NCBI RefSeq assembly: GCF_023055435.1
Contig: NW_025963890.1
Span: forward strand, 73,966,001-74,030,000
DNA from: Haliotis rufescens
Lineage: Eukaryota
DNA: 64,000 nt
Direction: 5' to 3'
A model generated the notes under the pieces. That model searched no databases. It had not been told where the DNA came from and saw only the letters and a list, made by a program, of their open reading frames with translations. Position numbers and translations under genes: made by a program. Of the stretch, positions 169-47,011 are shown in pieces; the first letter of the stretch is position 1; each line of letters starts with the position of its first letter.

Positions 169-524
169 CGGATTACAGAGGCGATGCGACATGAATGCAG
201 ATGAATAATGTGTTTGGTTTGCATGGATCACTCAGCTGCCATCACTGTGTAATGTCCTGTAAATTCTATTTCACAATGATATTGCTGAAGGATAATGACA
301 TTGGAACAGTATCATGATTTGATCTGCTTTTAACAAGATATTTTTCCATTACTAACTTTGAAAACTGAAATCATTGGTGCATATTTCATCAAGAGAAGTT
401 GGTTTCAGATCTCCAAAAGCCAGGATTAAAGATTCTGAAATGCTTGAAACAACAGGGAACACGAAACGAAAATCCACTGGAATGAGACAGTTACGCTACA
501 GTGGCTCCCTCAGGTAAACCCAGA

Positions 525-3500
525 ATGTATGGTCGACAAACACCTATCAGATCTACATCAACTGCAAAGTCTGTCTCCAAAGCAGATGGGCAATTATGTG
601 GATCTTCGTCAAAATCTTCAGCTACCAAGATACCTCAAGTGAAATATCCCCCACGGTCTAAGGAGGATAAACATGAACTATCACCTGTGAAAGACACAAA
701 ACACCCAACGGCTTCAAGTACCCATGCAAAGAAAGAGAGAAGTGAACTTAATTCAAAATTACGAGTGTCAAAACAAGATGACACACATCCCCTTTTCCCA
801 TCTGATAAGGTCAAACTACCCAAAGTAAAATATCCTCCCCGGACAAAGGAGGAAAAACGTGAACTATCATCTGTGAAAGACACAAAACATCCAGTAATAT
901 CAGCTTCAAGTTCTTGGTCAAAGAAAGAGGATAACCAAATCAGGCCAAAATTTGATCATTTAAATGTCTCTCCAATGATAGAAGATGAAAATAAACTAAC
1001 CACAGCACTATTGAAGGAGAAATGTACGACGACGAGGCATAGACGTGCTAATTCTAATCGTCTTGTTAAAGCAAATGTGTCTTTGCCGGGAAATAATAAT
1101 GACTGTTTACTAACCAGACAATCAAAGACGGCAGGGAAAGTTGAACATGAAGAAGAAACTGCTGGGGATTCAACAACAAAAGGGCAACCACAAAGAGAAT
1201 GTGGAGAAGAAGAAATGTTTTCAACCTCAGGAGTGGACCTGCCTTTTTCGTTTAAAAATAATTCTTTTCTACATAGTGTTTTCAAACCTGTTATTTCATT
1301 TTGCATCGAAAATACATCCAGGATCTCAGTTTTTGTCCGGAGAATTATTATTTATTGCATTTCAAAGTTAACTTTTCAGCATTTTTCAGACCAAATTCAA
1401 GGGAAATCCACTGATAAAATGAAATCATGTGACCATAAGGTTACTAAACTATCAACTACCAAGTCACAAATATGTCTTAAGCAGGACTCTTGGCAGTTGG
1501 CAAGAAGTTTTGAAAAAACAAAAATATGTCATTCACAGAAGACATTCACCAGACACAAACACTATAACCTTGACACATCAAAGATGGATGCATTGGTCAG
1601 TGGAATGGTAGACAGACATATCATTCGCAACTCTGACAATCCAACAAGGGACATCAAGTATTTTTTTGAAAATGAAGTTAAGATGGAGCAGAGGGACATC
1701 CAGCCGGCGTTGGTGCACTATAAATGGTTGAGAGAAAAGATTGTTGGACGATTAAACAGTGAGATGAACTTTGGGACATGGAAGGTTTGCAATGCAGGGT
1801 CGCATTTTGATGGCACTAAGGTAAGAATATGATCATTGCAATATAAGTTTTTGTTTCCTAAAGTTATTACAAATATTGTTTGTCGTACATTTGGGAATTC
1901 TAATATTTTTAACACGTGACGTAAGAATACTGACATAAAAAATTAGATTTATGAGTCACATCCTTCTACAGGTGGCTCGACCAAATGAAATGGACTGCAC
2001 AATGTTCCCAATTCTTCAGACCAAACTTGAGGCTGTGTTTGATGACACCTGCAAAGCTGGAGCCTGCAAGGTGAAGGTCATCGGGGATGTGGATGACCAC
2101 GAGGAGGATCTCCGGCTATTCCTTGATGGAGGCTTTGTTAACTCTAAAAAGTTCAGGAAATACGTCTTTGAGAAGCTTGAACGTGTTCTTGAGAGTGATA
2201 GAAAGTTAAAGGGTTCGTTGATTTATGTCACATCTTCAAATTCATAAATGTCTGTCAATATGATGTACGGTTGTATAAATCTATTATTTTTGAGACGCAA
2301 CATCAGTTTATCAGCATACAGTTTAACTTCACACATTTGAGGTTGAGGTCTTACTACCAGCAGGAAACACAAATTACTACAAATACGTTTTGTTTCAGAT
2401 GCTCGCAAGTTCAAAGATTCACAGTCTTTTGCAGTCAGGTATGAGGGTATTCCATCTGATGAAGGGATGAAAAGTATTGACATAGACTTTGTGCCATCCT
2501 TAAACATTAAACCCTGGCCTAGAAAGAACGTTTCCCGAGACATCACAGACATTCTCCCAGACCAACGGAAACGTACAGCTGCATCAATTAAGAAATATGG
2601 ATTCAATGCAACACCGAAGTTCTGGTATCAAGGTTAGTAATTAACGATGGAATATTTATGCTAGCTCTATATGTTGATGCATCAATTAAGAAAAATGAAT
2701 TCAATGCAACACCGAAGCTCTGGTATCAAGGTTAGTAATTAACGATGGAATATTTATGCTAGCTCTATGCATGTATGTTGATGCATCAATTAAGAAAAAT
2801 GGATTCAGTGCAACACCGAAGCTCTGGTATCAAGGTTAGTAATTAACGATTGAATATTTATGCTAGCTCTAAATGTTGATGCCCCTGAGAGGGGCATATA
2901 AACCTGATCTTAAATTGTTCATACAAGTTGTATACAGAAATGTGTAGACATGAAAAGACAAGACAGATAATCAACCCATCTCCTGCAGAAGATCTGCTAC
3001 TGAATTTCAAAGAGAGTTTGAGATTGCTGATAGCCCCAGTCATCCTATTTTCTTTGAAAAATAATTAGTAAGTCGATTTTGTCTTTGGAGAAATTTGGGG
3101 GGACCTCATGCACATGGGGGTACGTCTAAGGTGCCTCACCTCTCAATGAAGACTTGTGTCCTAATTATGTGTCTAGGTCAGCACCATTAGTGTGCTCATG
3201 GGTCTTGCTTAATCGGGGCTTTCACCTGCATTATGTTCACCAACTTTGGTAGAAATTCGGAATTGTTCAATATCAACTGTTGAACTGTTTTAAACAGCAA
3301 ATGTACATATCTGAAGAAATCCTTGAAAATATCTTTCTTTTGAAAAGCAAAAGATCCAGACCTCCTGTGGCAAGTTTCCTTTTCCTATGCAGAGAAGGCC
3401 ATCACTAAACATGCTGACAAGATTTCTTGGAAACCATCACTTAGAACATTGAAAAGAGTCTTGGAAATTGCAAAAGGCAACAGTGATTGTTGTGCCAAGG

Positions 3501-3847
3501 GTAACAGTCCAGAACTCGTGCAGATCCAGGAAGCAGTGAGATATGTCAAGGAGCATAATCCTAAACTGCGTTCCTCCCGACTGACGACATACCACATCAG
3601 AACACTCATGTGGTGGCAGCTGTATGATCTTACAGCAGGGGAGCACGTATGGAGGCAGGAAACAATGGCTGCAAGATTCCAGGACTGTCTCCGGAAGTTC
3701 CAGAAGATGATGACAGGGGAGATAGTGGTGCCACACTTCTTCCTACCCCAGATCAAGAACATCTTACCGTGGATACCAGAAGAGGAGAGGGTATTTCTCT
3801 ATGTCATAGCAAAGGCAACTGAGGTTGTGTTCACACAAAAAAAATGA
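525..3847 (+). CDS. cGAS-like receptor (cGLR, Mab-21 NTase), copy A; exons 525-1820, 1972-2212, 2399-2632, 3348-3847 (~756 aa from ATG 525; true 5' end uncertain)
   Basis: GT-AG junctions join in phases 0,1,1. They give GSHFDGTK|VARPNEMD (cGAS GSYYEHVKISAPNEFD), SIDIDFVPSL (third catalytic Asp), WQVSFSYAEK (cGAS WRLSFSHIEK), TTYHIRTLMW (cGAS SSYHVKT) and VPHFFLPQIKNIL. The N-terminus is Lys/Ser-rich. Region 1240-1390 looks intron-like but is open in frame. Confidence 0.88.
2581..2880 (+). repeat. Three tandem ~100-bp copies of the cGLR-A exon 3 end plus its splice donor
   Basis: GCATCAATTAAGAAA...CACCGAAG.TCTGGTATCAAG|GTTAGTAATTAACGAT occurs three times, with donors at 2633, 2731 and 2835. 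Confidence 0.9.
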
Positions 3848-6902: not shown

Positions 6903-9900
6903 TTAGTTCATATGACCTATACATGGGTCATTCAAAAGCCATATACATGTGATAACTTGAATAAATAGGGACATAATCATTGAGAACAGTTGGACACTGG
7001 TTGAACCAGAAACTACAGAAGCTGCTGTTTCCACAATATGGAGTGGAGGTAAGGAGTGGTACACTTTGGAGTGGAACGGTGTCCCACGGGGAGGGCCTTT
7101 GCGCACATCTGAGAGTGTTCCATCTGCAAATTATGTCATCAAATATTAATACAAGTACATATTGGAAAATTGCATAGACTCTGATGGGTGCCAAAGAATA
7201 GAGGTACATATATGAAATGAATCTTGTTTTGGTTGTATCACCTGAAGAAGCTGTGACAACATTCTAAATGGCTGAAAATATCCACATAATAAATGGGGGA
7301 ACTTGGTGGCTTTACATCAATTTGACATACTTTTCGTTTCAGCTCATGTATCATGTCAACCAACATATGCTGGATATACTTCTGATGCACACTACAGAAC
7401 CATATACCCAAATGGTGCAAATCCATACATCTAACGAACAAAGGTATTCATTATAATGTTCACTAACCTTCTCTAGCTCTGATATAATCATGGAGAGTTC
7501 TTATTTGTTGCTGTCCTGTGTCAGTCGTCCTCCTTGGAAGCAGTGCCGTGAGTCTCTGGGAGGTTGGGGACATGCCAGGGATATATTCAAGCAGATGACA
7601 TAAGTTCCATTTTCGTATGACTTCTAAAATCTGCAGAAAAGGTTAAAACAACACCATGATAGGCGATGATAATGCAGTAAATTTCAAAGATTGACATATA
7701 CTTAGTCAAATTAAAAACTTCACATTTTTAAAAGTAATCCCATATATGATAAACAACGGACAAATGTATCAGAGTAGGTAATTTTTAATCATTAATGTCC
7801 AAAGAAGGATTTTAATTAACGGTGGTAACCATAATTTGTTCGAAGCACCTACGGTATTCGGTAATAACATCAACAGTTTAAATCATAAGTCCCAAGCACG
7901 AGAATCTGATGGCACACAAGTTCAGTAGCGTGTATGGCCATCATGTGCGTTGACAACTGCCACACAACGCCTCCGCATGGACCTTGTGATGCTTGTGAAC
8001 ACATGATTGGGAAGACGACGCCATTGTTGCTGCAAAATGGTGCCAAGATCTTGCAAATTCTATGGTTGGTTCTGGAGAGTGCGCAGATTTCTGCCAAGAG
8101 CATCCCAGAGGTGTTCGATGGGATTGAGGTCGGGAGACCTTGACGGCCAGTCCATGATGTTGACTCCCGCATTCTGAAGGAAATTCCTTGTCAAAATTGC
8201 TGTGTGGGGTCTGGCCTTGTCGTGTTGGAAGATCAAACCGGGTACATGTGCTGCCATAAAAGGCAGAAGTTCTGGTGCCAGTACCTGGTCGCGGTAAGCA
8301 GCAGCGTTGAGGTTGCCACGGATGACAAGAAGTCTGGAACGTGCATTGCCACAGAAAGCACCCCACACCATGACACTTCCGCCTCGAAATCTGTCAACTT
8401 CCTGTACACCACACTGGGCGTAACGTTCATGACGGCGCCTCCAAACCCTCGCCCTACCATCAGCAAATCGAAGATTAAATCGGGATTCATCACTGAAGAC
8501 GACTTTATTCCAATTCCTCTGAGTCCATCGTAAGTGTCGCTGTGCCCACAATTGACGTTGACGTCTGTGTAATTGAGTCAGAATCGGCCCGCAGTATGGC
8601 CGTCGTGCTTGAAGGTGAGCAGTTCTCAGACGGTTTCGAACAGTTTGCGCACCCAGTCTACCCCTAAACAGTTAATTTCTGGTTGATGTAGCCGTTAAAA
8701 ATCGGTTATGGAGTTGAAGTAAGACAATCTGACGATCCTCTGCACGTGACGTCACACGTGGTCGACCTGTCCGAGGGCGATCAGCGGTGGCACCCGTTTG
8801 CTGTAGACGCGTCTGTTAATCATAAACAGTCCGTCGACTACAACCCATCGTCCTTGCGACTTCAGCTATGGACGTTCCCGTCTGCAACATGCCGATGGCA
8901 CGTTCACGTTGCACATGTGAAAGGCGTGGCATGACAAATGGCCGTAAAGTCTTTTGTTTTCTTGTGTTTTTTGTGTTTTTTGAATGACTGCTAACAAGAA
9001 TAGCTGAAAACACGGGGGGGGGGGGGGGGGGGGGGGGGGTGCTGATCAGTGCTGATCGATTCACCTGCACAAAAACGGGTGTTATCTGAAGACAATACGT
9101 GGCCATTACTGTTTAAATACACAATAAGGGCCCACAATGATAACTGGTCAAAACGTTAAAATTTTAAGCTTGTGAAGTTTTTAATTTGGTTCAGGATATA
9201 TACATACATTTTATCAAGCTATGCGTGTGATTAACAAATGATAACTACTGATTATTGCTGTCACATCCGTTGAAGTGTAATTATAACATTGTTTCAGTTG
9301 ATGAACTTCGGTATATGCTCACCCCACAGTGTTGTAGTCCCTCTGTAAGCTGGTTCAACATTGGTTTGCTGCTGAACAGCACAAAGTGTTGGATACACCC
9401 TTTGACAAACTCAGCCCTAGTAGCCATTGTGACATGTGATGGGAGTGTGTCTATGGATGCCCTCCACTCACAGATCTTCAAGGCTTCGTGCAGTTCACCC
9501 TCGGTCTCAGCACTTTGCACCTGTCAGAAGAGCAATGTCTGGAGTCACTGAAAAATGCTGGTTACAGAACAGTTTTGATTTTAGCTGTAGTGTAAGAAAG
9601 TTTCAATTGACATGTTCAATCTAGTTCAGAGAATACCATATCTTACAAAGTTCACCTTAAGGAAAAGAATTTATGGATGTCAACTTACTCCTTCATCAGG
9701 TGGTCATTCAGTGGTCATCCACCTGATGAAGGAATAAGCACATACTTCGAAACGTTGTGTTCCTCACCATAAAGAAGTTGACATCCATACATTCTCTTCC
9801 TTATGTGTATGACTTCTAAATGCCTCTCTAAGACTTGAAAGTTCACCTTGCTTAAAGCATCTCTAATGTGTGGATATGGCACATGTTCTAGTGATGCACA

Positions 9901-12268
9901 TGTGTTGACTCCTAGGATGGCATCTGCTACAGGTCGTGCGAAGATAGCAGCACCTTGTCCTCCCTGAGCTATGATGGTGGCGAGCATGACCCCCAGAACC
10001 CGGAAGTAGCCTTGGTCTAATAGTGATTGGCTTGGACGGATACATAGGCCATGTTCATTGCCTGGTAACATAATTGAAAATGATTTGTAACAGTGCATTA
10101 TGAAAAGTGAGACTTATTTGTTTAATGATAAACTCTCAGGAAACAAAGGATCTGCTATTATTATTCAGTGATCTATGAAACTGAAATCAGTAAGTAAAAT
10201 TATGGCATGGTTAAATGAAAAGTTTTACATACGAAAGTCTCTTCTAAGAGAACAAACATAAGGGCATGGTGTATAGCATCTTCCCGAGGCAAGAGTGTAA
10301 ACTGGAAAAGTTTCCACCCTTGCCGAACCAGGCTGGAATTCCTCGCCTAGATCGTAGCGCCACCAGTGGCTATTAGGAGTTATGTCCCTTCTATGCCTCT
10401 CATATGGACCAATCAGATTCAACCTCTCGTATGACTTGTTTCAAACAAAATGGCGGCGCCCAGTCAAGACGATCTGGACGATAATCAAGAACTATATTGT
10501 GATAAGACGGTCGCTAAGAGCATCAAATCACGTGAACACCTTAATTAAAAACATGGAAAAAAATGGAAATATCAGTTGACAACGAGTTGCGCTGTACCTG
10601 CTTTGCAAATCCTAATCAAATGAAATCTGCATGACAGTTTAAGAAAAGGATTTCGATTTCGTTGCGTGAGTTTGATTAGGGTATGCATAGTCTGGTTAGT
10701 CCAGCCAATATCTAACTCCATAATACCAGCCTAGTTCGGGAAGGGTGGAAAGTGGACTATTATAGTCAGTTAATTCTCTTGGCTCGGGAAGATGGGTTTA
10801 TAGCAGTTGATTGTGAATAAGATACATATATATCTTTCTGTTTTCTCGATTAACCCAAGTGACGATTGCTCCATTACTTACCATGTACCATTTTGCTGTC
10901 AGTGATGATGACATCCAATAACAGATTCAGATATTCCTTCCTTGAAGAATCGGCGTCAACAACAGCCTCCCGATGCCCCTTACCATCCTCAAACACCACC
11001 TACAAAACATAAATGGCGCCAATGCTGTAATAAATATGTCATTTAAAATAACATAAGTGTCTTCTGGTTTGGATTCCTGCTTTTAAAAAATTGTTCTTGC
11101 CTCTTAAACATAAATACTACTCACCATCAAACTATTTGCAGAGTTGGCAACTGCGACAGTGCAGAAGAAGTTAATGCTGCTGTCCCACACGTCCTGTCTA
11201 TCGACCATGATGATTACAGAGGGATATCTCACACATCTCTCAACATGATCCTGAAGTGCTATGGCTTGTACCCTCTCAAAGGGGTCTTCTCTGATAACAG
11301 ATCAGGATGTTGTTTTTAAAAAGATTGTTCAAGAGTCATATTTTTTTAGTAACTATTATACGTTTATATTTTACTTCTTGAATAATAGTGAAAGTGAGAT
11401 ATATCAAATCATTGTTTTGGAGATTGTACATCTATAACAGAAACCATGATCCTACATACGTATCATGTTGGGGATTATAGTGATGAGATTTTTTAAATCC
11501 GTTCCTTGAAGGCTCATCGTTGATTTCCATTGCTGAAGGCCTGGTGTAGCTTTGTTTTTCTAATAACTGTCCCTGAGGATCTTCACCAGACACGATCTCT
11601 TGGTCTAATGACTGGTTCTCAGGGGAATTTTCATCACTGTACTGGTTTTCTTGTGGCTCAAATTGATCCGTAACACTTGTATCAATAAGTCCCATGGGTG
11701 TTGCTTCGGGAAGAAAATCCATTCCAATGTATTCTTGGTCAGCTCCCTCTTCACTGAGACTCATCATGTGACTCTGTTGCTTTTGATATAAATAATTGCT
11801 TGTCTGACGATCAAACGAAGCATTTTGACTTCTAAGGTCGACAAGTGCCCGAGAATTCGTGTGTGCACACCTTTGCAGGTGCTGTGGTGGAGTTAGAACT
11901 AGTCTCTTCAACCGTGTATCAAATTTAACGGAAAATGAGCTGATGATACTTAGGTCATGACGATGTTTCGCTGATCTGGTGGAGGTTATCACATGTCTTG
12001 AATGACAAGCGTGATCACCGGGACTCATACCAGCATCGCTACAGCTGGAACAAATCGTCTTCATTGCTTTTGGTCGGTAGGTGGTCTGCCTCAACCCAAG
12101 CCTGCATTTGACCAGGTCTTTGAAGCTTGCACCACAGTGGGGACATGGTTTCATGGCGACAACGACTGTACAGTCCCAGCCTCCTCTCCGGGAGAAGACC
12201 TTTGAGGTGTTACTTCTCCTCCTGAAGACAGGTACCCCTGAACGACACCAAGTACAGCTTATACGCAT
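6903..12268 (-). CDS. Divergent G2E3-like HECT-domain protein; exons 12268-11460, 11290-11125, 10999-10882, 10061-9847, 9520-9323, 7630-7468, 7123-6903 (629 aa from ATG 12268)
   Basis: Six GT-AG introns with matching phases (2,0,1,0,0,1) give a stop-free 1890-nt ORF. HECT-like motifs: IMVDRQDVWDSS; VVFED...EAVVDADSSRKEY (cf. AVDxGGPxREF); YFRVLGVMLATIIAQGGQG; LEHVPYPHIRDAL; MLNQLTEGLQHCGILEVIRK. The family call is by eye, not by HMM. Confidence 0.7.
7699..9197 (-). mobile_element. Tc1/mariner DNA transposon (DD34E-type transposase, inactivated) in an intron of the HECT-like gene
   Basis: Transposase starts at ATG 8932 (MPRLSHVQRERAIGML) and contains GRPRVTS, FSDESRF, VMVWG, FQHDKARPH and WPSRSPDLNPIEHLWD. 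In-frame stops (e.g. 8816-8818). Imperfect TIRs CAAATTAAAAACTTCAC / GTGAAGTTTTTAATTTG with TA flanks. Confidence 0.9.
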
Positions 12269-39139: not shown

Positions 39140-42100
39140 TTATGAGTATCGGTCAGTGCTTCTAGAAAACAGGATTTCCGTGGCCCTGACCAAGATGTAC
39201 ATGAACTCCCTGTCCCTCCACCGCACTGTACTCATCATGTCCCCGACTGCAGGCAGGAAGAAGTGGGGCACCCTCATCTCGCCAGTCAACATTTTCTTGA
39301 GTTTGCCCAGAGAGAAGTGCAACCTGCTCTCTCGAGTATCCTCCCTCCACACATGGCTCCCGGCGGTGAGGTCGTACAGCAACGTCCACATCAAGGTCCT
39401 AATGTGGTAGGTTGTGAAACATAACCGGAACGAGTCGTCTCTGAAGTAATGTTTTCTTGTGTGTTGGGCTACTTCATGAATCATCTCGGACTTTCCTGTG
39501 ACCATGAGCCCCTTTTGTCCTTTGGCAATCTCCATTACTCTTTTGATTGTTCGGAGGATAGGCTTCCAGCTTTCGGTGTCACCATGTAAAGTGAGGTTCT
39601 TCTCAGCGAGGGAGAAGGACATCTGCCACTGCAGACGGTCTGGTTGGTCACCTGAAACAGATACCATGGTGATGACCAGGGCCCACTTGCACAATGCGAT
39701 CATAGCGCTAAGATGATCTTAACACCATACTTTAACAAAGGGTTACAATAGTCTCAGCGCCAAGATCGTTTTGCGCAAGCGGGCCCTGAACATTAGTGGT
39801 TCAACCAGGTCAGTGGGATATCATGCAAATGAACATATGAGACATAATGCAAATGAACATATGAGACATCATGCAAATGAACATATGAGACATCATGCAA
39901 ATGAACATATGAGACATCATGCAAATGAACATATGTGAGACATCATGCAAATGAACATATGAGACATCATGCAAATGAACATATGAGACATCATGCAAAT
40001 GAACATATGAGACATCATGCAAATGAACATATGTGAGACATCATGCAAATGAACATATGAGAGACATAATGCAAATGAACATATGAGACATCATGCAAAT
40101 GAACAAATGAGACACATCATGCAAATGAACATATGTGAGACATCATGCAAATGAACATATGAGAGACATCATGCAAATGAACATATGAGATTCATCATGC
40201 AAATGAACATATGTGAGACATCATGCAAATGAACATATGAGAGACATCATGCAAATGAACATATGTGAGACATCATGCAAATGAACATATGAGAGACATC
40301 ATGAAAATGAACATATGTGAGACATCATGCAAATGAACATATCAGAGACATTATCCACTTGGCATATTCAAATAAAATTTTACTCAAGAATGACTGCGAG
40401 GTCCTTACCAGGGCAGCGCTTTGTTGTTATGTTGAAACCTTTTTCCATGATGTCAGTGACGTTGATTGAAGGGGATATGCCCTTGGGTAGGGTTTTTTTC
40501 AGATCCCGAGCAATCAACGGCTGTGGCCAGTGTGGGATGTTGAGGGCTGGAACGATGTCAACATCGATGTCAAGGGTGCCGTGGTAGGTAGTGGTGCCAG
40601 TGTAGGTGATGCCGAATGATGGGGATCCAGCATGTGTTTTGTTCTCTGTCAGAAAAATCCAGGGTAGAATTGGTCTTCAGCAACCCATGCTTGCCGTTAC
40701 TGGCGACTATGCTTGTCGGAGGAGGCGACTAACTGGATCGGGTTTAGGCTCGCTGACTTGGTTGATGCATGTCACCGTATACCAATTGCGTGGATCGATG
40801 CTCATTGCGTCAATCACTGGATTGTCTGGTCCAGACTCGATTGTTTACAGACCGCCGTCATATAGCTGGAATATTGCTGAGTGCGGCGTTAAACAACATA
40901 TTGACAAACAAACAAAACTGTGAGAAAGCAATGTACTCAATGCAGGTGTCAATGACGAAATAATTACTTATGCAAGCAAAAAACAATGCATTGAAAAAGA
41001 TGTCACTTAATGTTGACAAGTCTTTACCCAGGATTTAATATTGAAGGACTGAACAATGGGCCTTTTGGATACAGAAAGTGTTGTTTCTTTTGTTTTGTTA
41101 CCATTGACAACGCTGTAAGAATCTACATCGAAACTTCGCTAAATGCAGTAAAACGGAAGTTGTTGTCCATAACATTGTACTTTTTCTTACTTACTCACCA
41201 ACTTCTAGATTGCAAATATTACTTACCCCTACATTTGGAATTGTGGCGTATATATTTGTCCATCAGTTCAAAGAAGAAATTCCGATATTTCTCAGCGTTG
41301 ATGAAGCTGTTGTCGCATAAATAGTTTAAAGATGGTGATGCATTTACCACTCTGACTTTGCAATAGCCAGGATGGCAGTCCTCGTACACGGGTTGAAGAT
41401 CGGAATCAACTTTCGGAATGAATAAACAATCCATTTCGTTAGGCCGGGACACCTTAAAATAAGACAACTGTGGGGTTGGCCGTGTGGATATAGGTAGACA
41501 TATAAGTATAAAGAGATCCCTGAGAGTCGGATTTTATCGAATTTCTTTTTTGTCCCAAGCCATTTCATTTCATAAGGTCGGGACAGCTTTAAAACAAGAG
41601 ACAACTGTGGGATTGGTTGTATGGATATAAGAAAACAAATACTTAAAATATAAAGAGATCATTTACAGTTGGATTTTATCGAATAATTGTCCCTGAAAAT
41701 TCTTGGAAAATATAATTACATTGTTGCAAATATTTTCTTTTTAATAAAAATACATTCAAGCTCATGCCTCTCAAAGTCCGGCGGTCGTCGTTGTCCTTGG
41801 TCTTCACGTATTGAGAATTGTTGACCCTAAAATTTTAATTCTCTTGCCGTTCAATAGCACACTTTTGGCATGTATTGATTTGATGGCTGTTTGCTACCTT
41901 CTTCGTGTATTGAAGAAGTTTTTGTTACTTCGACTTTCACGCATTAGCCGGATTACCTGGCTCTTGTTGAAATTTCTCTTGCATTTTTGGTCATTTTTGG
42001 CACCTCAATAATACATAGTATTAGTACATATCTGGTTGTAAATCTTTAGTGGTACTGTTGGGTAGCGTATGTTCAGCGCTATATTTTGGTACTTACATGT

Positions 42101-45100
42101 TCCATATTGGTTCAATAGTTAGTTTGCTATTCGGGTTTTCCTATGCCTACCCCCTGCTGACCAGGAATGGCTGTTCTCTACGACGTGCACGCATACGGGT
42201 TTAAACCTTGTCTTTACCTCCAGGCATCGCTAGACCGTTTACCAGTCGTCTTGCTACTGGTTTGCTCAGGTCGAAACTTCGTTAGTAAGTCATTATGGGG
42301 AGGTATCTCTCTCTGGGAGTCAGGTTACTCTTTTGGTCAAGTACCTATTGACTATTGGGAGTCAGGTTACTCTTTTGGTCAAGTACCTATTGACTATTGG
42401 GAGTCAGGTTACTCTTTTGGTCAAGTACCTATTGACTATTGGGAGTCAGGTTACTCTTTTGGTCAAGAACCTATTGACTATTGGGAGTCAGGTTACTCTT
42501 TTGGTCAAGAACCTATTGACTATTGGGAGTCAGGTTACTCTTTTGGTCAAGTACCTATTGACTATTGGGAGTCAGGTTACTCTTTTGGTCAAGAACCTAT
42601 TGACTATTGGGAGTCAGGTTACTCTTTTGGTCAAGAACCTATTGACTATTGGGAGTCAGGTTACTCTTTTGGTCAAGAACCTATTGACTACTGGGAGTCA
42701 GGTTACTCTTTTGGTCAAGAACCTATTGACTATTGGGTGTCAGGTTACTCTTTTGGTCAAGAACCTATTGACTATTGGGAGTCAGGTTACTCTTTTGGTC
42801 AAGAACCTATTGACTATTGGGAGTCAGGTTACTCTTTTGGTCAAGAACCTATTGACTATTGGGTGTCAGGTTACTCTTTTGGTCAAGTACCTATTGAATA
42901 TAAGGAGTCAGGTTACAAGTACCTTTTTAATTATTATGAGTCAAGAGACTCCATAGGTCAAGTACCTTATAGTTTCGGGAAGTAGAATTTCCTTGCCCAG
43001 TTAAAGTGACAGAGTCTTCAGTTCTCTTTGCCATTAACTTGTAAAATTGTTGATTTAGCTTCTTCTTAATTACTCTATTACAGTTGCTTAGTTAATCAGC
43101 TTGTGTATTTGTTCTGATTTAAATAGTCAGCGATCACTGTCAGTGTAAATTGGGTTTTTGATCCTTTATATTGTCGTCTATTGATACAATTTGCTGATTA
43201 TAATAAACCTGTGAACCTATCATCACGTTTTCCTTATAACGTTATAAATGTTTTTATACACCCTGGTCTCTGGGGCAGAGCTCCGTGAGAGTAAGGTACA
43301 ATTTTCAGTAAGTGGTTATTTTATGTAATACCAATACTACTTTAACTTACACCAAGAATAATTCCAGCACACATGATAGACACGGGTTATAATATACTGA
43401 ACCGCAAAAGAAACGTCACCATGGGTACATATATGAGAAACCTTATTTGTGTCCAAACACTGTACACATACTTTCAGACATATTAAAAAAATGAAACTTG
43501 ACAAAACTGATCATAAAGGTTGAAATTGAAGTGTCAAATGTTCTAAAGTGAAACACAGCACAAGTCTCTGAGAAAATCGCATTACAAGTCAGTATCTCGT
43601 GTGTCAGCCATGTGCATTGATGACTGCCGTGCAACGTCGATACATGGAATGGATGAGGCTGTTGATGAAGGCCATAGGGACTTGAACCCACACTCTGAGG
43701 AACGCATGACGCAATTCAGCTGCAGTTGTCGGCCTTGGTCGGACGTCATTCAGCCGTCTGTGAATCTCGTCCCGCAGGAGCACAATGTGATTTAAATGGG
43801 GACTGAGGGCAGGCCACTGCATGGTTCTGATGCCATTCTGCTGGAGGAAGTCTCTTGTTGCTCTCGCAGTGTTGGCACGGGCGTTATCATGCTGAAACTC
43901 GTGGTTGTGGCGACGTGCCAAATGAGGTATGGCGTGTGGACTTGATCAGTGTACCGAACTGCTGTGACACTATTGCCTCTCCCTGGACCGATGTTCTGGA
44001 AGACCACAGGGCCGACGCTCTGTGCAAGACCAATCCCACTCCACACCAAGATGCTCAGGCCACCCTACGAGTCTCTCTCCACAACACAAGCATCCGAATA
44101 ACATTCCCCATGGCGTCGCCAGATTCACTCTCTCTGCCATCTGCTGTTGAGATACAGTAACGGCTCTCGCCTGAGAAGAGGACACTTCTCCACTGCTGGT
44201 GGCGCTAATGCTAGTGCTGTGTTGCCCACTGAAGACGATCCCAGCGATGACGTGGTGTCAGGATGGGTCCTCGGTGTGGCCTGTAATAGCGGAGGTGTCT
44301 GCTCGTCAATCGTCGAGGCACGGTGTCCGCACTAATGTCTCGCTGGTGTGTCCCCATGGTCTGTCGAGCAGTTTCCGCAGCAGTAACAAAGCGATCTTGA
44401 AGATGCTGTCGCACAATCTGACGATCCTGTCGTCAGGTGGTGACCCTTGGTCTTCCACTATGTGGTCGGTCATCTGTAGTGTTGGTGGTCTGGTACCGTT
44501 GCTGGAGCCTGTATGTGGTCCTAATCGTCCAAGGGCTTGGTGTCGCTGATTTCTTGTCAATCTTGGCATGTGGTAGCAATTCAATAACGAATGAATGTAA
44601 TCCGATCAGAGTGGATTTTTATAGGGAAAGAAATGGGGGAACGGTTTTATTGTCATCTGCTTTGTTTTTTATCATCAAATTTCATTTTTCCGGACAAGGT
44701 AATGTTAAATTTTAGAAACTTTGACAAAAATTACCAGATATTTAAATGACAACGTTTCAATGTTACTTGGTGTGACGTTTCTTTTGCGGTTCAGTATATA
44801 TTCTACGTCCATATTATTGTATATACTTCTCCTGTACATACTCTTTGCGTTGTTTAATAATATAAAGAATGCACCCTCACCTTAGTTTTGTCATAATAAG
44901 AACCTCCTCGAAACGTTGTCCATTTCCAATGTGTCTTTGACTCGAGAAAGTCACAGATATTGTTCTGCAAGTTATTAAAAACTTCTGCCGTATTTTCGAT
45001 TTCATTTTGTTTAAGTGACACTTCATCCTCAAAAAACTTTGAAATTTCAGTTCTAGGATTTCTTGAATGTTCCAGTATTCCAGTATCGACCATGTTTCTA

Positions 45101-45960
45101 ACAGTGTCTTCCATCGTTGACACTGCATCTCTGTCCATCCTGTTTGAGTTTGTTCTGTGTTGCCAACTAGTTGTCACCCTTTTTGGGGAACAGAAGCCTA
45201 GGGGTTTGGTATGGACACACAGAGATCGTTTATCGTCTAACGACATTCCTGAACGACCTCTGCCATCACATTTCTTGTGGTTATTCAAATCCACAAACCA
45301 CTTGTTGCAATCGGGACACTGCTCTTTGTCATCGGACGAGCTACGACTAACTGATTGGCGTCTGCCATCACATTTCTTGTGCTTATTCAAATCCACAAAC
45401 CACTTCTTGCAATCGGGACACTGCAGTTTGTCATCAGACGAGCAAGGACTAACTGATTGGCGTCTGCCATCACATTTCTTGTGGTTATTCAAATCCACAA
45501 ACCACTTGTTGCAATCGGGACACTGCTCTTTGTCATCGGACGAGCTACGACTAACTGATTGGCGTCTGCCATCACATTTCTTGTGCTTATTCAAATCCAC
45601 AAACCACTTCTTGCAATCGGGACACTGCAGTTTGTCATCGGACGAGTAAGGACTAACTGATTGGCGTCTGCCATCACATTTCTTGTGCTTATTCAAATCC
45701 ACAAACCACTTGTTGCAATTGGGACACTGCTCTTTGTCATCGGACGAGCTACGACTAACTGATTGGCGTCTGCCATCACATTTCTTGTGCTTATTCAAAT
45801 CCACAAACCACTTCTTGCAATCGGAACACTGCAGTTTGTCATCAGACGAGCAAGGACTAACTGATTGGCCTCTGCCATCACATTTCTTGTGGTTATTCAA
45901 ATCCACAAACCACTTGTTGCAATCGGGACACTGCTGGTTTGGGTTCTTTTTCTTCGGCAT
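39140..45960 (-). CDS. cGLR copy D; exons 45960-44881, 41452-41227, 40645-40409, 39651-39140 (684 aa): seven C2HC zinc fingers + Mab-21 NTase
   Basis: Same intron positions and phases as A-C. GSYYDKTK|VSRPNEMD, GSPSFGI (cGAS GSPAVTL), DIDVDIVPAL, WQMSFSLAEK, TTYHIRTLMW, VPHFFLP. Confidence 0.9.
39817..40345 (+). repeat. 24-26-bp minisatellite (~21 units) in cGLR-D intron 3
   Basis: Unit GAGACATCATGCAAATGAACATAT(GT/GA). Confidence 0.95.
42314..42960 (+). repeat. 42-bp minisatellite (~15 units) in cGLR-D intron 1
   Basis: Unit GGGAGTCAGGTTACTCTTTTGGTCAAGWACCTATTGACTATT. Confidence 0.95.
43395..44796 (-). mobile_element. Decayed Tc1 transposon in cGLR-D intron 1
   Basis: TIRs TACTGAACCGCAAAAGAAACGTCAC / GTGACGTTTCTTTTGCGGTTCAGTA with TA flanks. 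Fragmented transposase: MPRLTRNQRHQALGRL, VWSGI, FQHDNARA, WPALSPHLNHI. Confidence 0.88.
45268..45930 (-). repeat. Coding 102-bp (34-aa) repeat x7 encoding C-x2-C-x9-H-x2-C fingers
   Basis: CPDC(N/K)KWFVDLN(N/K)HKKC with alternating linkers ending DDKLQ / DDKEQ. Confidence 0.92.
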
Positions 45961-47011
45961 GATTGTATAGACTCGCTATACAGCAGTCTGGACACACTGC
46001 CTGTGGGGTGTGTGGATTCGCCTGCAGCAAATAGGACATGCTGTCCGTTGGGTGTGTGGATTCGCTGCAGCAGCTAGGACATGCTGTCTGTTGTGTGTGT
46101 GGATTCGCCTGCAGCAGTTGGGACACACTTTCTGTTGGTTGTGTAGATTCACCTCCAGCAGTTAGGACACAATTTCTGTGACTATTGGGTCGCCTCGTGG
46201 TAGTCAGGTCACATTATATCTGTGTGTAACTGGTGTTTGGAGACACGCTGCGATAAAGAAAGAAATTACATTGAATAGAAATGTAACGCCCTCTGGCGTA
46301 GAGCTTCAATATGGTGGGAACAGCTGTGAAAGAGGTCATGCATACCGCTCCTTAATCCACTTACTGAGCCTCCGCAATTGAGTGTTTGTCTACTTTCGTT
46401 CTTGGAGCATGCTAGGAGCATGTTACAGGAAGCCCTGAATGATTCCGAGAATAGATCACCAGCAACCTTTGCTTGTTTCGGGGGCGGCTTCCTCGAGTCG
46501 TCGGGTTCGGTGGCATGGTTGACTGCATGTCAGCGTGCCCGACATGCTGATAATGTCACTGGGTTGTCAGGTTCAGGCTCAAGTTCTTACAGGATGACGT
46601 CATGTAGCTCGGATGTTGCGACGTTTAGCAATAAACAAACAAATGTTCAGGCAAACGTGAACTCAAAGAAGAGACGATAACATAATCAATGTTAGTGCTC
46701 TGGAAGCTCAATCTATTGATTCACCAATTCCACCAAGTCGATATGTTTAACAACTGGTATCATCACTATTTCATAGAGATTCATAAACACATACTTATGT
46801 CACAGTCGTGCAATGGACTCCAAGGGGAAATTCAGCATGTGTAAAAGGAGGACCCCCCCTCCCCACACACACACACACACACCTCACTCTGGATCCGCCT
46901 ATGGTTTTAGCACAGATTCTTTATGATATCGAAAAGGGTTTTGTCGTTTTTATTTACAACGAGAACAATCAAAATGTCGTTCTCGTCAAGGACTACAGTT
47001 TATAACCTTAA

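Follow-up and report, generated by a model that had tools for sequence, protein, structure and literature searches.

In the red abalone Haliotis rufescens, a gene for a cGAS-like receptor (cGLR), here called cGLR-D, encodes seven tandem CCHC finger units fused to an intact nucleotidyltransferase (NTase), and both parts are transcribed in the same mRNA. The gene lies on the minus strand of the 64,000-nt stretch of DNA that was analysed (the window: positions 73,966,001 to 74,030,000 of contig NW_025963890.1, RefSeq assembly GCF_023055435.1); coordinates without a prefix are positions in this window. It is a four-exon Mab21/cGLR gene (LOC124133248) of 684 codons with GT-AG introns, and its model matches XP_046353534.2 (P0019, 684 aa), which RefSeq names "uncharacterized protein". 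The kind of enzyme is known; the accessory finger module and its dynamics are new. Judged by comparison within and between species, the finger marks out a small clade of gastropod cGLRs and changes fast in copy number. As to function, we infer that the array is an accessory multivalent capture module for a polyanion, a long nucleic acid being the likeliest ligand, and put the probability of this reading at roughly 0.55.

An earlier reading of this DNA, made from the letters alone (the original prediction), had claimed seven 34-residue units of the form C-x2-C-x9-H-x2-C, nearly identical in DNA and alternating as a 204-bp repeat. Both claims are borne out. In a regular-expression search of the six-frame translation, all seven units on the minus strand fit this pattern and are spaced by exactly 34 residues, the interval 45268-45930 being bounded exactly by the first Cys codon of finger 1 and by the last of finger 7. 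Tandem Repeats Finder (TRF) reports a single array at 45259-45935, with a period of 102 nt (6.6 copies, 93% matches) and a second period of 204 nt (3.3 copies, 97% matches). Over 102 nt there is no difference between units 4 and 6 and a single one (1 nt) between either of them and unit 2; the units alternate between two types that lie 7-8 nt apart. Across the seven units these differences spare the four ligand residues, an aromatic pair (W-F) and a conserved Leu. The N-terminal 240 residues of cGLR-D thus consist of seven CCHC units, each with a basic, aromatic 17-residue core and a Ser-rich linker; the net charge of the array is +18 and its isoelectric point (pI) 9.1, that of the finger core being 8.85. 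Because the units share 31-mers, Logan contigs break within the array (k-mer ambiguity), and the count of seven is taken from the chromosome-scale assembly and from the RefSeq model, which is identical, not from short-read contigs.

The gene model was checked exon by exon, as exact substrings of P0019. Exon 1 opens with the ATG at 45960, which has an in-frame stop five codons 5' of it, and then encodes in order the seven fingers, a linker of about 40 residues predicted with low confidence, and the N-terminal helices of the Mab21 core as far as GGS (codons of G353-S354 at about 44899-44904). It ends with ...FRGGSYYDKTK at the donor AAG/GTGAGG (GT at 44880-44879). The fingers and GSYYDKTK, which had been claimed to be in frame with one another, are therefore both in this exon. 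The three introns are of 3428, 581 and 757 nt.

Is the array part of the message? Logan contigs of four runs were mapped to 40380-46200; three of the runs, from three studies, were guessed to be RNA and one DNA. Contigs of all three RNA-type runs skip 581 nt (40645 joined to 41227) and 3428 nt (41449 joined to 44878, the cut being shifted by +3), so that 44881 is joined to 41452 at the joint between exons 1 and 2. On the plus strand the skipped stretches are bounded by CT..AC, corresponding to GT..AG on the minus strand; the DNA run has neither splice joint. All three RNA-type runs show zero depth at unique intron bins and so behave as transcriptomes. One RNA contig of 1574 nt runs through exons 3, 2 and 1 up to 45286, within finger 7, and extends 703 nt past the exon 3 end of the mapped stretch. 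Others cover 45795-45898 and 45904/45906-46200 (X8, X16, X17) and extend a further 107-187 nt upstream, from which it follows that the transcript starts upstream of the array; the start downstream of the repeats that the original prediction had considered is not what the RNA contigs indicate. The seven-finger array is transcribed in the same mRNA as the intact NTase, with contigs covering both edges of the array and the 5' untranslated region (5'UTR).

The enzyme itself is readily recognized. Residues 355-534 of P0019 match Pfam Mab-21 (PF03281; E 2.8e-17; 63.9 bits, cut-off 24.1), and the closest solved sequence found by phmmer is Cv-cGLR1 (8GJW, 1.7e-29). An AlphaFold2 (AF2) model of cGLR-D was built with a 13-sequence family alignment; in the core its predicted local distance difference test score (pLDDT) is 80-95. 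Foldseek places 8GJW at the top (E 4.8e-21, template-modelling score 0.83), followed by dozens of cGAS chains, and model and search agree on the caged cGLR fold, an NTase core with a C-terminal helix bundle. G353, S354, E366, D368 and D465 are invariant in the 13 family members (alignment A2). The motif published by Li et al. (2023, PMC9980059), GS [x8-20] [DE]h[DE]h [x50-90] h[DE]h, is present in cGLR-D, with 11 residues from GS to E and a second spacer of 94, slightly longer than the upper limit of 90. Where the published motif has Q/T before GS, cGLR-D has G; this position is not a strict one, being S in the active Cv-cGLR1 and K in 8GJY. By alignment and model, then, the core of cGLR-D is a Mab21 NTase with the cGLR/cGAS fold and an intact GS...E.D...D active site.

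cGLR-D is one of six four-exon cGLR (Mab21) genes, designated A to F, that tblastn with the D exons locates in 224 kb around the window (C112:73.87-74.08 Mb; the prefix C112 marks positions on the chromosome). As had been claimed, the D core is without the cysteines of the Zn thumb: at the place of the cGAS-type thumb H-x5-CC-x6-C after SFS..AEK its sequence is ...AEKNLTLHGDTESWKPIL..., which contains neither an insert nor a Cys, the thumb-less stretch AEKNLTLHGDTESWK being located in exon 4. After SFS.AEK the alignment shows a deletion in D and in paralogues A, B, C and F, and an insert with H...C...C in the E lineage and in relatives from Nucella. The further proposal that the fingers substitute for the Zn thumb is weakened by this distribution, because the thumb-less paralogues carry only zero or one finger and E has both an insert at the thumb position and four fingers. 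It is weakened further by the closest solved enzyme, the dsDNA-activated Cv-cGLR1 (Li et al. 2023, PMC9980059), which in the aligned stretch has at that position no more than three inserted residues, one of them Cys.

Table 1. Features of the cGLR-D locus (positions in the window) and finger content of the six clustered cGLR genes
Feature	Position	Strand	Basis or content
Array of seven 34-aa CCHC finger units	45268..45930	minus	TRF, six-frame translation regex, unit-by-unit comparison, AF2
Finger 1, Cys-to-Cys	45880-45930	minus	
Finger 2, Cys-to-Cys	45778-45828	minus	
Finger 3, Cys-to-Cys	45676-45726	minus	
Finger 4, Cys-to-Cys	45574-45624	minus	
Finger 5, Cys-to-Cys	45472-45522	minus	
Finger 6, Cys-to-Cys	45370-45420	minus	
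Finger 7, Cys-to-Cys	45268-45318	minus	
Coding exon 1 (1080 nt)	44881..45960	minus	Open reading frame (ORF) list; residues 1-360 of XP_046353534.2
Exon 2 (...SRPNEMDCLF..., catalytic E366, D368)	41227..41452	minus	Residues 361-435 of P0019
Exon 3 (...TLDIDVDIVPAL..., third catalytic Asp D465)	40409..40645	minus	Residues 437-514 of P0019
Exon 4 (C-terminal helical bundle, WQMSFSLAEKNLTLHGDTESWK, stop codon)	39140..39651	minus	Residues 516-684 of P0019
5'UTR	45961..46200, continuing further upstream	minus	RNA-type contigs, TRF
cGLR-A	421-3838		No finger in main first exon
cGLR-B			1 finger, then Ser/Thr-Pro repeats
cGLR-C			1 finger, then Ser/Thr-Pro repeats
cGLR-D	This locus		7 fingers
cGLR-E			4 fingers, 52-aa units; same exon as SGSYYDGTK
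cGLR-F			No finger found

The finger is harder to place than the enzyme. Single units rise above no Pfam curated cut-off. Among 13 single units, weak matches were found to zf-C2H2_4 (7 units), zf-LYAR (PF08790; 6 units, with a near full-length layout and a best E of 0.011), zf-C2H2 (4 units) and zf-C2HC_2 (4 units). By layout the LYAR-type C2HC is the closest CCHC family, but the D finger is not a member: its first unit reaches 13.8 bits, under the cut-off of 20.7 bits, over profile positions 3-21 of 28. Nor does it conform to the classical C2H2 pattern (PF00096 / PF13894; C-x2-4-C-x12-H-x3-5-H), single units giving sub-cut-off E values of 0.0005-0.02. When PDB sequences were searched with a profile of 13 paralogous fingers, classical C2H2 proteins alone matched, and these only in the CP-x-C-G-K-x-F half; the ESM Atlas gives for the array C2H2-type leads only, all below 0.9. 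One candidate was rejected, Zn_ribbon_19 (PF14369), whose whole-protein score of 60.9 bits is made up of six repeated partial matches to the second knuckle; this is a four-Cys family (C-x2-C...C-x2-C), three of the 13 single units match it (best E 0.012), and the ligand set here is CCHC. The positions C, C, L, H and C do not vary among the paralogous fingers; the last of the ligands, a Cys, falls at H+2 to H+4 throughout the clade (H-x1-3-C). With the family alignment, AF2 predicts for each unit a strand, a second strand and a one-turn helix (pLDDT about 75), and linkers below 50; a single-sequence AF2 model of exon 1 (pLDDT 37) was not used. We therefore describe this zinc-finger-like unit as a CCHC type of its own, unclassified and looking like a shortened relative of the C2H2-like fingers with their beta-beta-alpha fold.

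Near-identical repeats in a coding exon raise the question of whether the array has any function at all. It could be a neutral, recently expanded coding minisatellite, or an artefact of assembly or annotation, and the near-identity of the units in DNA would agree with this, as would the fact that short-read contigs give no check on copy number. But arrays with the same 34-aa period and a homologous linker are present in independent assemblies of three species, the D orthologues having seven fingers in H. rufescens, eight in H. cracherodii and 11 in H. rubra. The four ligand positions are kept in all 26 fingers of these three proteins. Moreover, the 17-residue core is the same, letter for letter, in 10 of the 11 units of H. 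rubra and three of the seven of H. rufescens, whereas the protein after the array is 67% identical between these two species and the linker has diverged. The array is also transcribed, with an open frame, and has parallels in paralogue E, whose orthologues carry four fingers in red abalone, five in black abalone and one in H. asinina, and in a Nucella lapillus relative with three near-identical 48-aa finger units. A neutral or artefactual array is therefore very improbable, and largely refuted already.

Substitutions specific to a species are common to its units: all five units of black-abalone E read ...HIIC and all four of red-abalone E read ...HKKC. This is a signature of concerted evolution. 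The identical finger core at 67% background identity, together with the common 34-aa period, indicates that the array is old, that it is homogenised by concerted evolution, and that the finger core is under strong purifying selection; on the same comparison the DNA units are nearly alike because exchange continues, not because the array arose recently. Of the recent expansion by unequal crossing-over that had been proposed, the unequal exchange stands, as the way in which copy number shifts, and the recency does not, the array being old and not simply recent. In H. cracherodii, an annotated isoform X2 (P0001, XP_071119160.1) uses an internal exon 3 acceptor and so loses the stretch containing the third catalytic Asp (..DIDVDIVP..); if real, this isoform would be catalytically dead but finger-bearing.

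What might the array do? In the reading we favour, each finger would make a weak contact with a polyanionic ligand, and tandem fingers would give higher avidity, so that long or clustered ligands are favoured. The array would hold the NTase on its activator, and the enzyme would then supply a cyclic dinucleotide to the genome's single STING. Unequal crossing-over and gene conversion would keep the units alike, leaving copy number free to drift or be selected. Many weak, identical, flexibly linked units are the architecture expected for avidity capture of a long or clustered polyanion. The pI values given above place cGLR-D among the basic cGLRs (pI >8.5) that Li et al. (2023, PMC9980059) tied to nucleic-acid sensing. 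A precedent in trans is the CCHC-finger protein ZCCHC3, a dsDNA co-sensor for cGAS (PMC6105683). As to the output, we found a single STING ligand-binding-domain locus in the H. rufescens genome, in agreement with Table S5 of Li et al. (2023, PMC9980059), which lists one STING for this species, and with PMC11103948.

Four points weigh against a nucleic-acid capture module. A single finger falls below every Pfam cut-off, and the Zn_ribbon_19 score is a sum of partial matches. The finger is about three residues shorter than a classical C2H2 finger between the conserved aromatic and the Leu, and because these residues are missing, canonical base-specific reading of the C2H2 kind by such shortened fingers is unlikely. 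Paralogues with the same kind of core have zero or one finger, which implies that the fold does not depend on the array, nor, in all probability, does basic activity. Finally, the same type of finger heads exons upstream of HECT-type exons, a position that a role with protein or ubiquitin fits equally well.

This last point deserves a closer look. The stretch C112:73889542-73896256 (+), with duplicates near 73904452-73910127 and 73928718-73934617, combines ORFs that begin with the same finger (two at 73889542 and at 73904452, one at 73928718) and go on with Pro-rich repeats, and HECT-type exons that follow about 6 kb downstream on the same strand. The C-lobe ORF among these (...RLPSASTCSNQ..., L037:3684-4127) matches Pfam HECT at 3.2e-10; most of the internal HECT-like ORFs gave no Pfam match. 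Within the window, a HECT-like gene (ORF 12268..11432, minus) begins with a degenerate finger (CPHCGASFKDLVKC). Between the two-finger exon and the HECT-type exons there is also a stretch resembling a ubiquitin-interacting motif (UIM) (SDEDALSVAIAASRDQQEA, C112:73891161-73891331, +), an ORF in which Pfam finds no match. Judged by genomic position, the finger module seems to be common to cGLR and HECT E3 genes of the cluster.

These neighbours suggest another role for the fingers, as protein-binding modules (for ubiquitin, a ubiquitin-like protein or some other partner) that link the cGLR to HECT-type E3s or to a shared platform, with additional copies raising avidity for chains or oligomers. 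The CCHC ligand pattern, which also occurs in UBZ4 and NEMO fingers, counts for this, as do the two-finger ORFs upstream of the HECT C-lobe exons, the degenerate finger that starts the in-window HECT-like gene, the UIM-like stretch, and a distant relative (P0010) with an N-terminal C-x2-C...H-x4-H and an FP pair reminiscent of UBZ1. Yet the UIM-like stretch is without a Pfam match, and the link between finger exon and HECT exons is one of position and strand. The ubiquitin-binding variant, a UBZ-like array, had been offered as an alternative in the original prediction and finds no positive support: no UBZ family is among the Pfam matches listed for the whole protein or for single fingers, and where UBZ4 fingers need an acidic residue (Asp) after the His, the residue here is basic or hydrophobic, not D (HKKC, HKIC, HIIC, HEWRC). 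We consider a primarily protein-binding array unlikely, if worth bearing in mind. A module common to a signalling enzyme and to E3 ligases could also bind a common ligand, which is compatible with capture of a polyanion.

A broader version of this idea is that the short CCHC finger is a new, lineage-specific pattern-recognition module which two effector classes of one gastropod immune gene cluster, cGLRs and HECT ligases, have in common and whose copy number (1-11) is tuned by unequal crossing-over under host-pathogen conflict. We offer this as a speculation with the odds well against it. If true, one ligand (a viral nucleic acid or protein) would trigger both cyclic-dinucleotide signalling and ubiquitination, and the cluster would be the animal counterpart of bacterial CBASS systems in which a CD-NTase is paired with enzymes of ubiquitin-like conjugation.

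The linkers invite a different explanation, in which the array would serve chiefly as a tether, for regulation or localisation. The N-terminus, basic, rich in Ser and open to phosphorylation, would set the place or time of NTase activity, much as the disordered N-terminus of vertebrate cGAS does, and the fingers would be no more than structured spacers. RRxS occurs in five of the six inter-finger linkers and S-x-x-[DE] motifs in every linker, and the linkers are predicted to be disordered (pLDDT <50, as above). In paralogues B and C, long Ser/Thr-Pro repeats stand in place of extra fingers, which suggests that tether length or modification matters. The kinase motifs are consensus matches only, however, and a tether leaves the conservation of the fingers unexplained: the linker diverges between species and the finger core is invariant, so selection acts on the fingers, not on the spacer. 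A tether as the main function is accordingly rather doubtful, and multivalent capture of a polyanion is the reading we retain.

The genomic distribution of the finger is narrow. Over the 1.33-Gb genome a finger profile matches only in about 135 kb of one chromosome (C112: 73.878-74.012 Mb). Matches of exon 1 on contigs C24, C57 and C157 of the same genome were discarded as low-complexity repeats, not fingers. A HMMER search with D exon 4 of 1.84 billion representatives returned only 18 related clusters, and the whole clade is hence small. Within the gene cluster, cGLR-E (XP_046353510.2, 674 aa; C112:73874713-73879400, minus; L006) has four identical fingers (CPYCNGKYTSLAKHKKC) in an array that is independent of that of D. 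When the D array and its 5' region were compared by blastn with the 224-kb cluster, there was no DNA similarity to the other finger exons, and thus no sign of recent exon shuffling. Four H. rufescens proteins (A, B, D and E) have intact catalytic GS/E/D/D residues, as do the relatives of F and of the B/C type from black abalone. An ORF at C112:73956710-73957282 (+), which lies upstream of the window start by about 9 kb, encodes one canonical finger and two shorter units (C-x2-C-x7-H-x2-C). The same N-terminus heads a 1069-aa cGLR of H. asinina (P0005) that is like an A orthologue, and the ORF is probably a distant first exon of cGLR-A.

Several repeats were seen in the noncoding parts of cGLR-D. 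The 5'UTR contains, just upstream of the ATG, a 44-bp tandem repeat (45981-46179; 4.5 copies, 82% matches). Intron 1 contains a Tc1/mariner transposase remnant (43600-44580, minus) with broken ORFs (...HDNARANTARATRDFLQQNGI...) and very high read depth, of which a second copy lies at 8060-9106 of the window (minus), as well as a long 48-bp tandem repeat that is open in two frames (42167-42985). In intron 2 there is an element resembling a short interspersed nuclear element (40660-40930), with many chimeric joints in every run and a summed contig word depth that reaches from the hundreds of thousands into the millions, and in intron 3 a roughly 24-bp satellite of the CATGATGTCTCATATGTTCATTTG type (39790-40330).

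In the papers searched there was no description of a cGLR with a zinc-finger array or of any gastropod cGLR, Table S2 of Li et al., on domains fused to cGLRs, being covered in part; no characterisation of the architecture was found either, in line with the original prediction. Li et al. list two cGLRs for H. rufescens (2023, Table S5, PMC9980059), and since a single 224-kb region has six, the finger-bearing clade has probably been under-counted and largely overlooked. For the question of what activates animal cGLRs and gives them specificity, this clade provides a discrete, strongly conserved and countable N-terminal module. Its natural copy series among paralogues and species (0, 1, 3, 4, 5, 7, 8 and 11) offers a ready system for relating receptor valency to ligand length or threshold. 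The finger type is itself unclassified and, in this genome, restricted to an immune gene cluster. There is a practical side as well: farmed abalone suffer herpesvirus epizootics, which gives antiviral sensors an applied interest.

How does cGLR-D compare with known systems? With the classical C2H2, LYAR-type C2HC (PF08790) and zf-C2HC_2 (PF13913) families its finger has in common the CP-x-C-G-K-x-F start, the conserved Leu and the His. These C2H2-like families also provide the best single-unit Pfam matches, and classical C2H2 the best PDB profile matches; the strand-strand-helix fold is predicted here. The abalone finger differs from them in its spacer, of nine residues against 11-12, and in having Cys as last ligand. 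With vertebrate cGAS the protein shares the fold and a basic N-terminal extension joined to the NTase. In cGAS the basic N-terminus adds DNA-binding valency; it is a disordered tail, whereas the extension of abalone D consists of structured, repeated CCHC units, and the H-x5-CC-x6-C thumb of cGAS is deleted in D. The fingers of ZCCHC3 are retroviral-type knuckles (C-x2-C-x4-H-x4-C). They resemble the abalone array in that CCHC fingers help a cGAS-type enzyme to capture its ligand, making ZCCHC3 a functional analogue of the proposed mechanism (PMC6105683), but ZCCHC3 is a separate protein, the abalone fingers are fused in cis and have another spacing, and no homology is claimed. Closest in the core is Cv-cGLR1 of Crassostrea virginica (8GJW), a mollusc cGLR with the same GS...E/D.D...D site (NEMD in D, DEFD in Cv-cGLR1), which is activated by dsDNA and makes 2'3'-cUA (Li et al. 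2023, PMC9980059). At the thumb position the aligned stretch of Cv-cGLR1 has only a three-residue insert with one Cys, and the matched part of 8GJW is the NTase core only, in which no counterpart of the 240-residue finger array was seen. The cGLRs of Stylophora pistillata (Li et al. 2023, PMC9980059) that bear ankyrin repeats and death domains likewise combine a cGLR core with a presumed ligand- or partner-binding module; the abalone module differs from these in being an N-terminal CCHC array that undergoes concerted evolution and changes in copy number between species.

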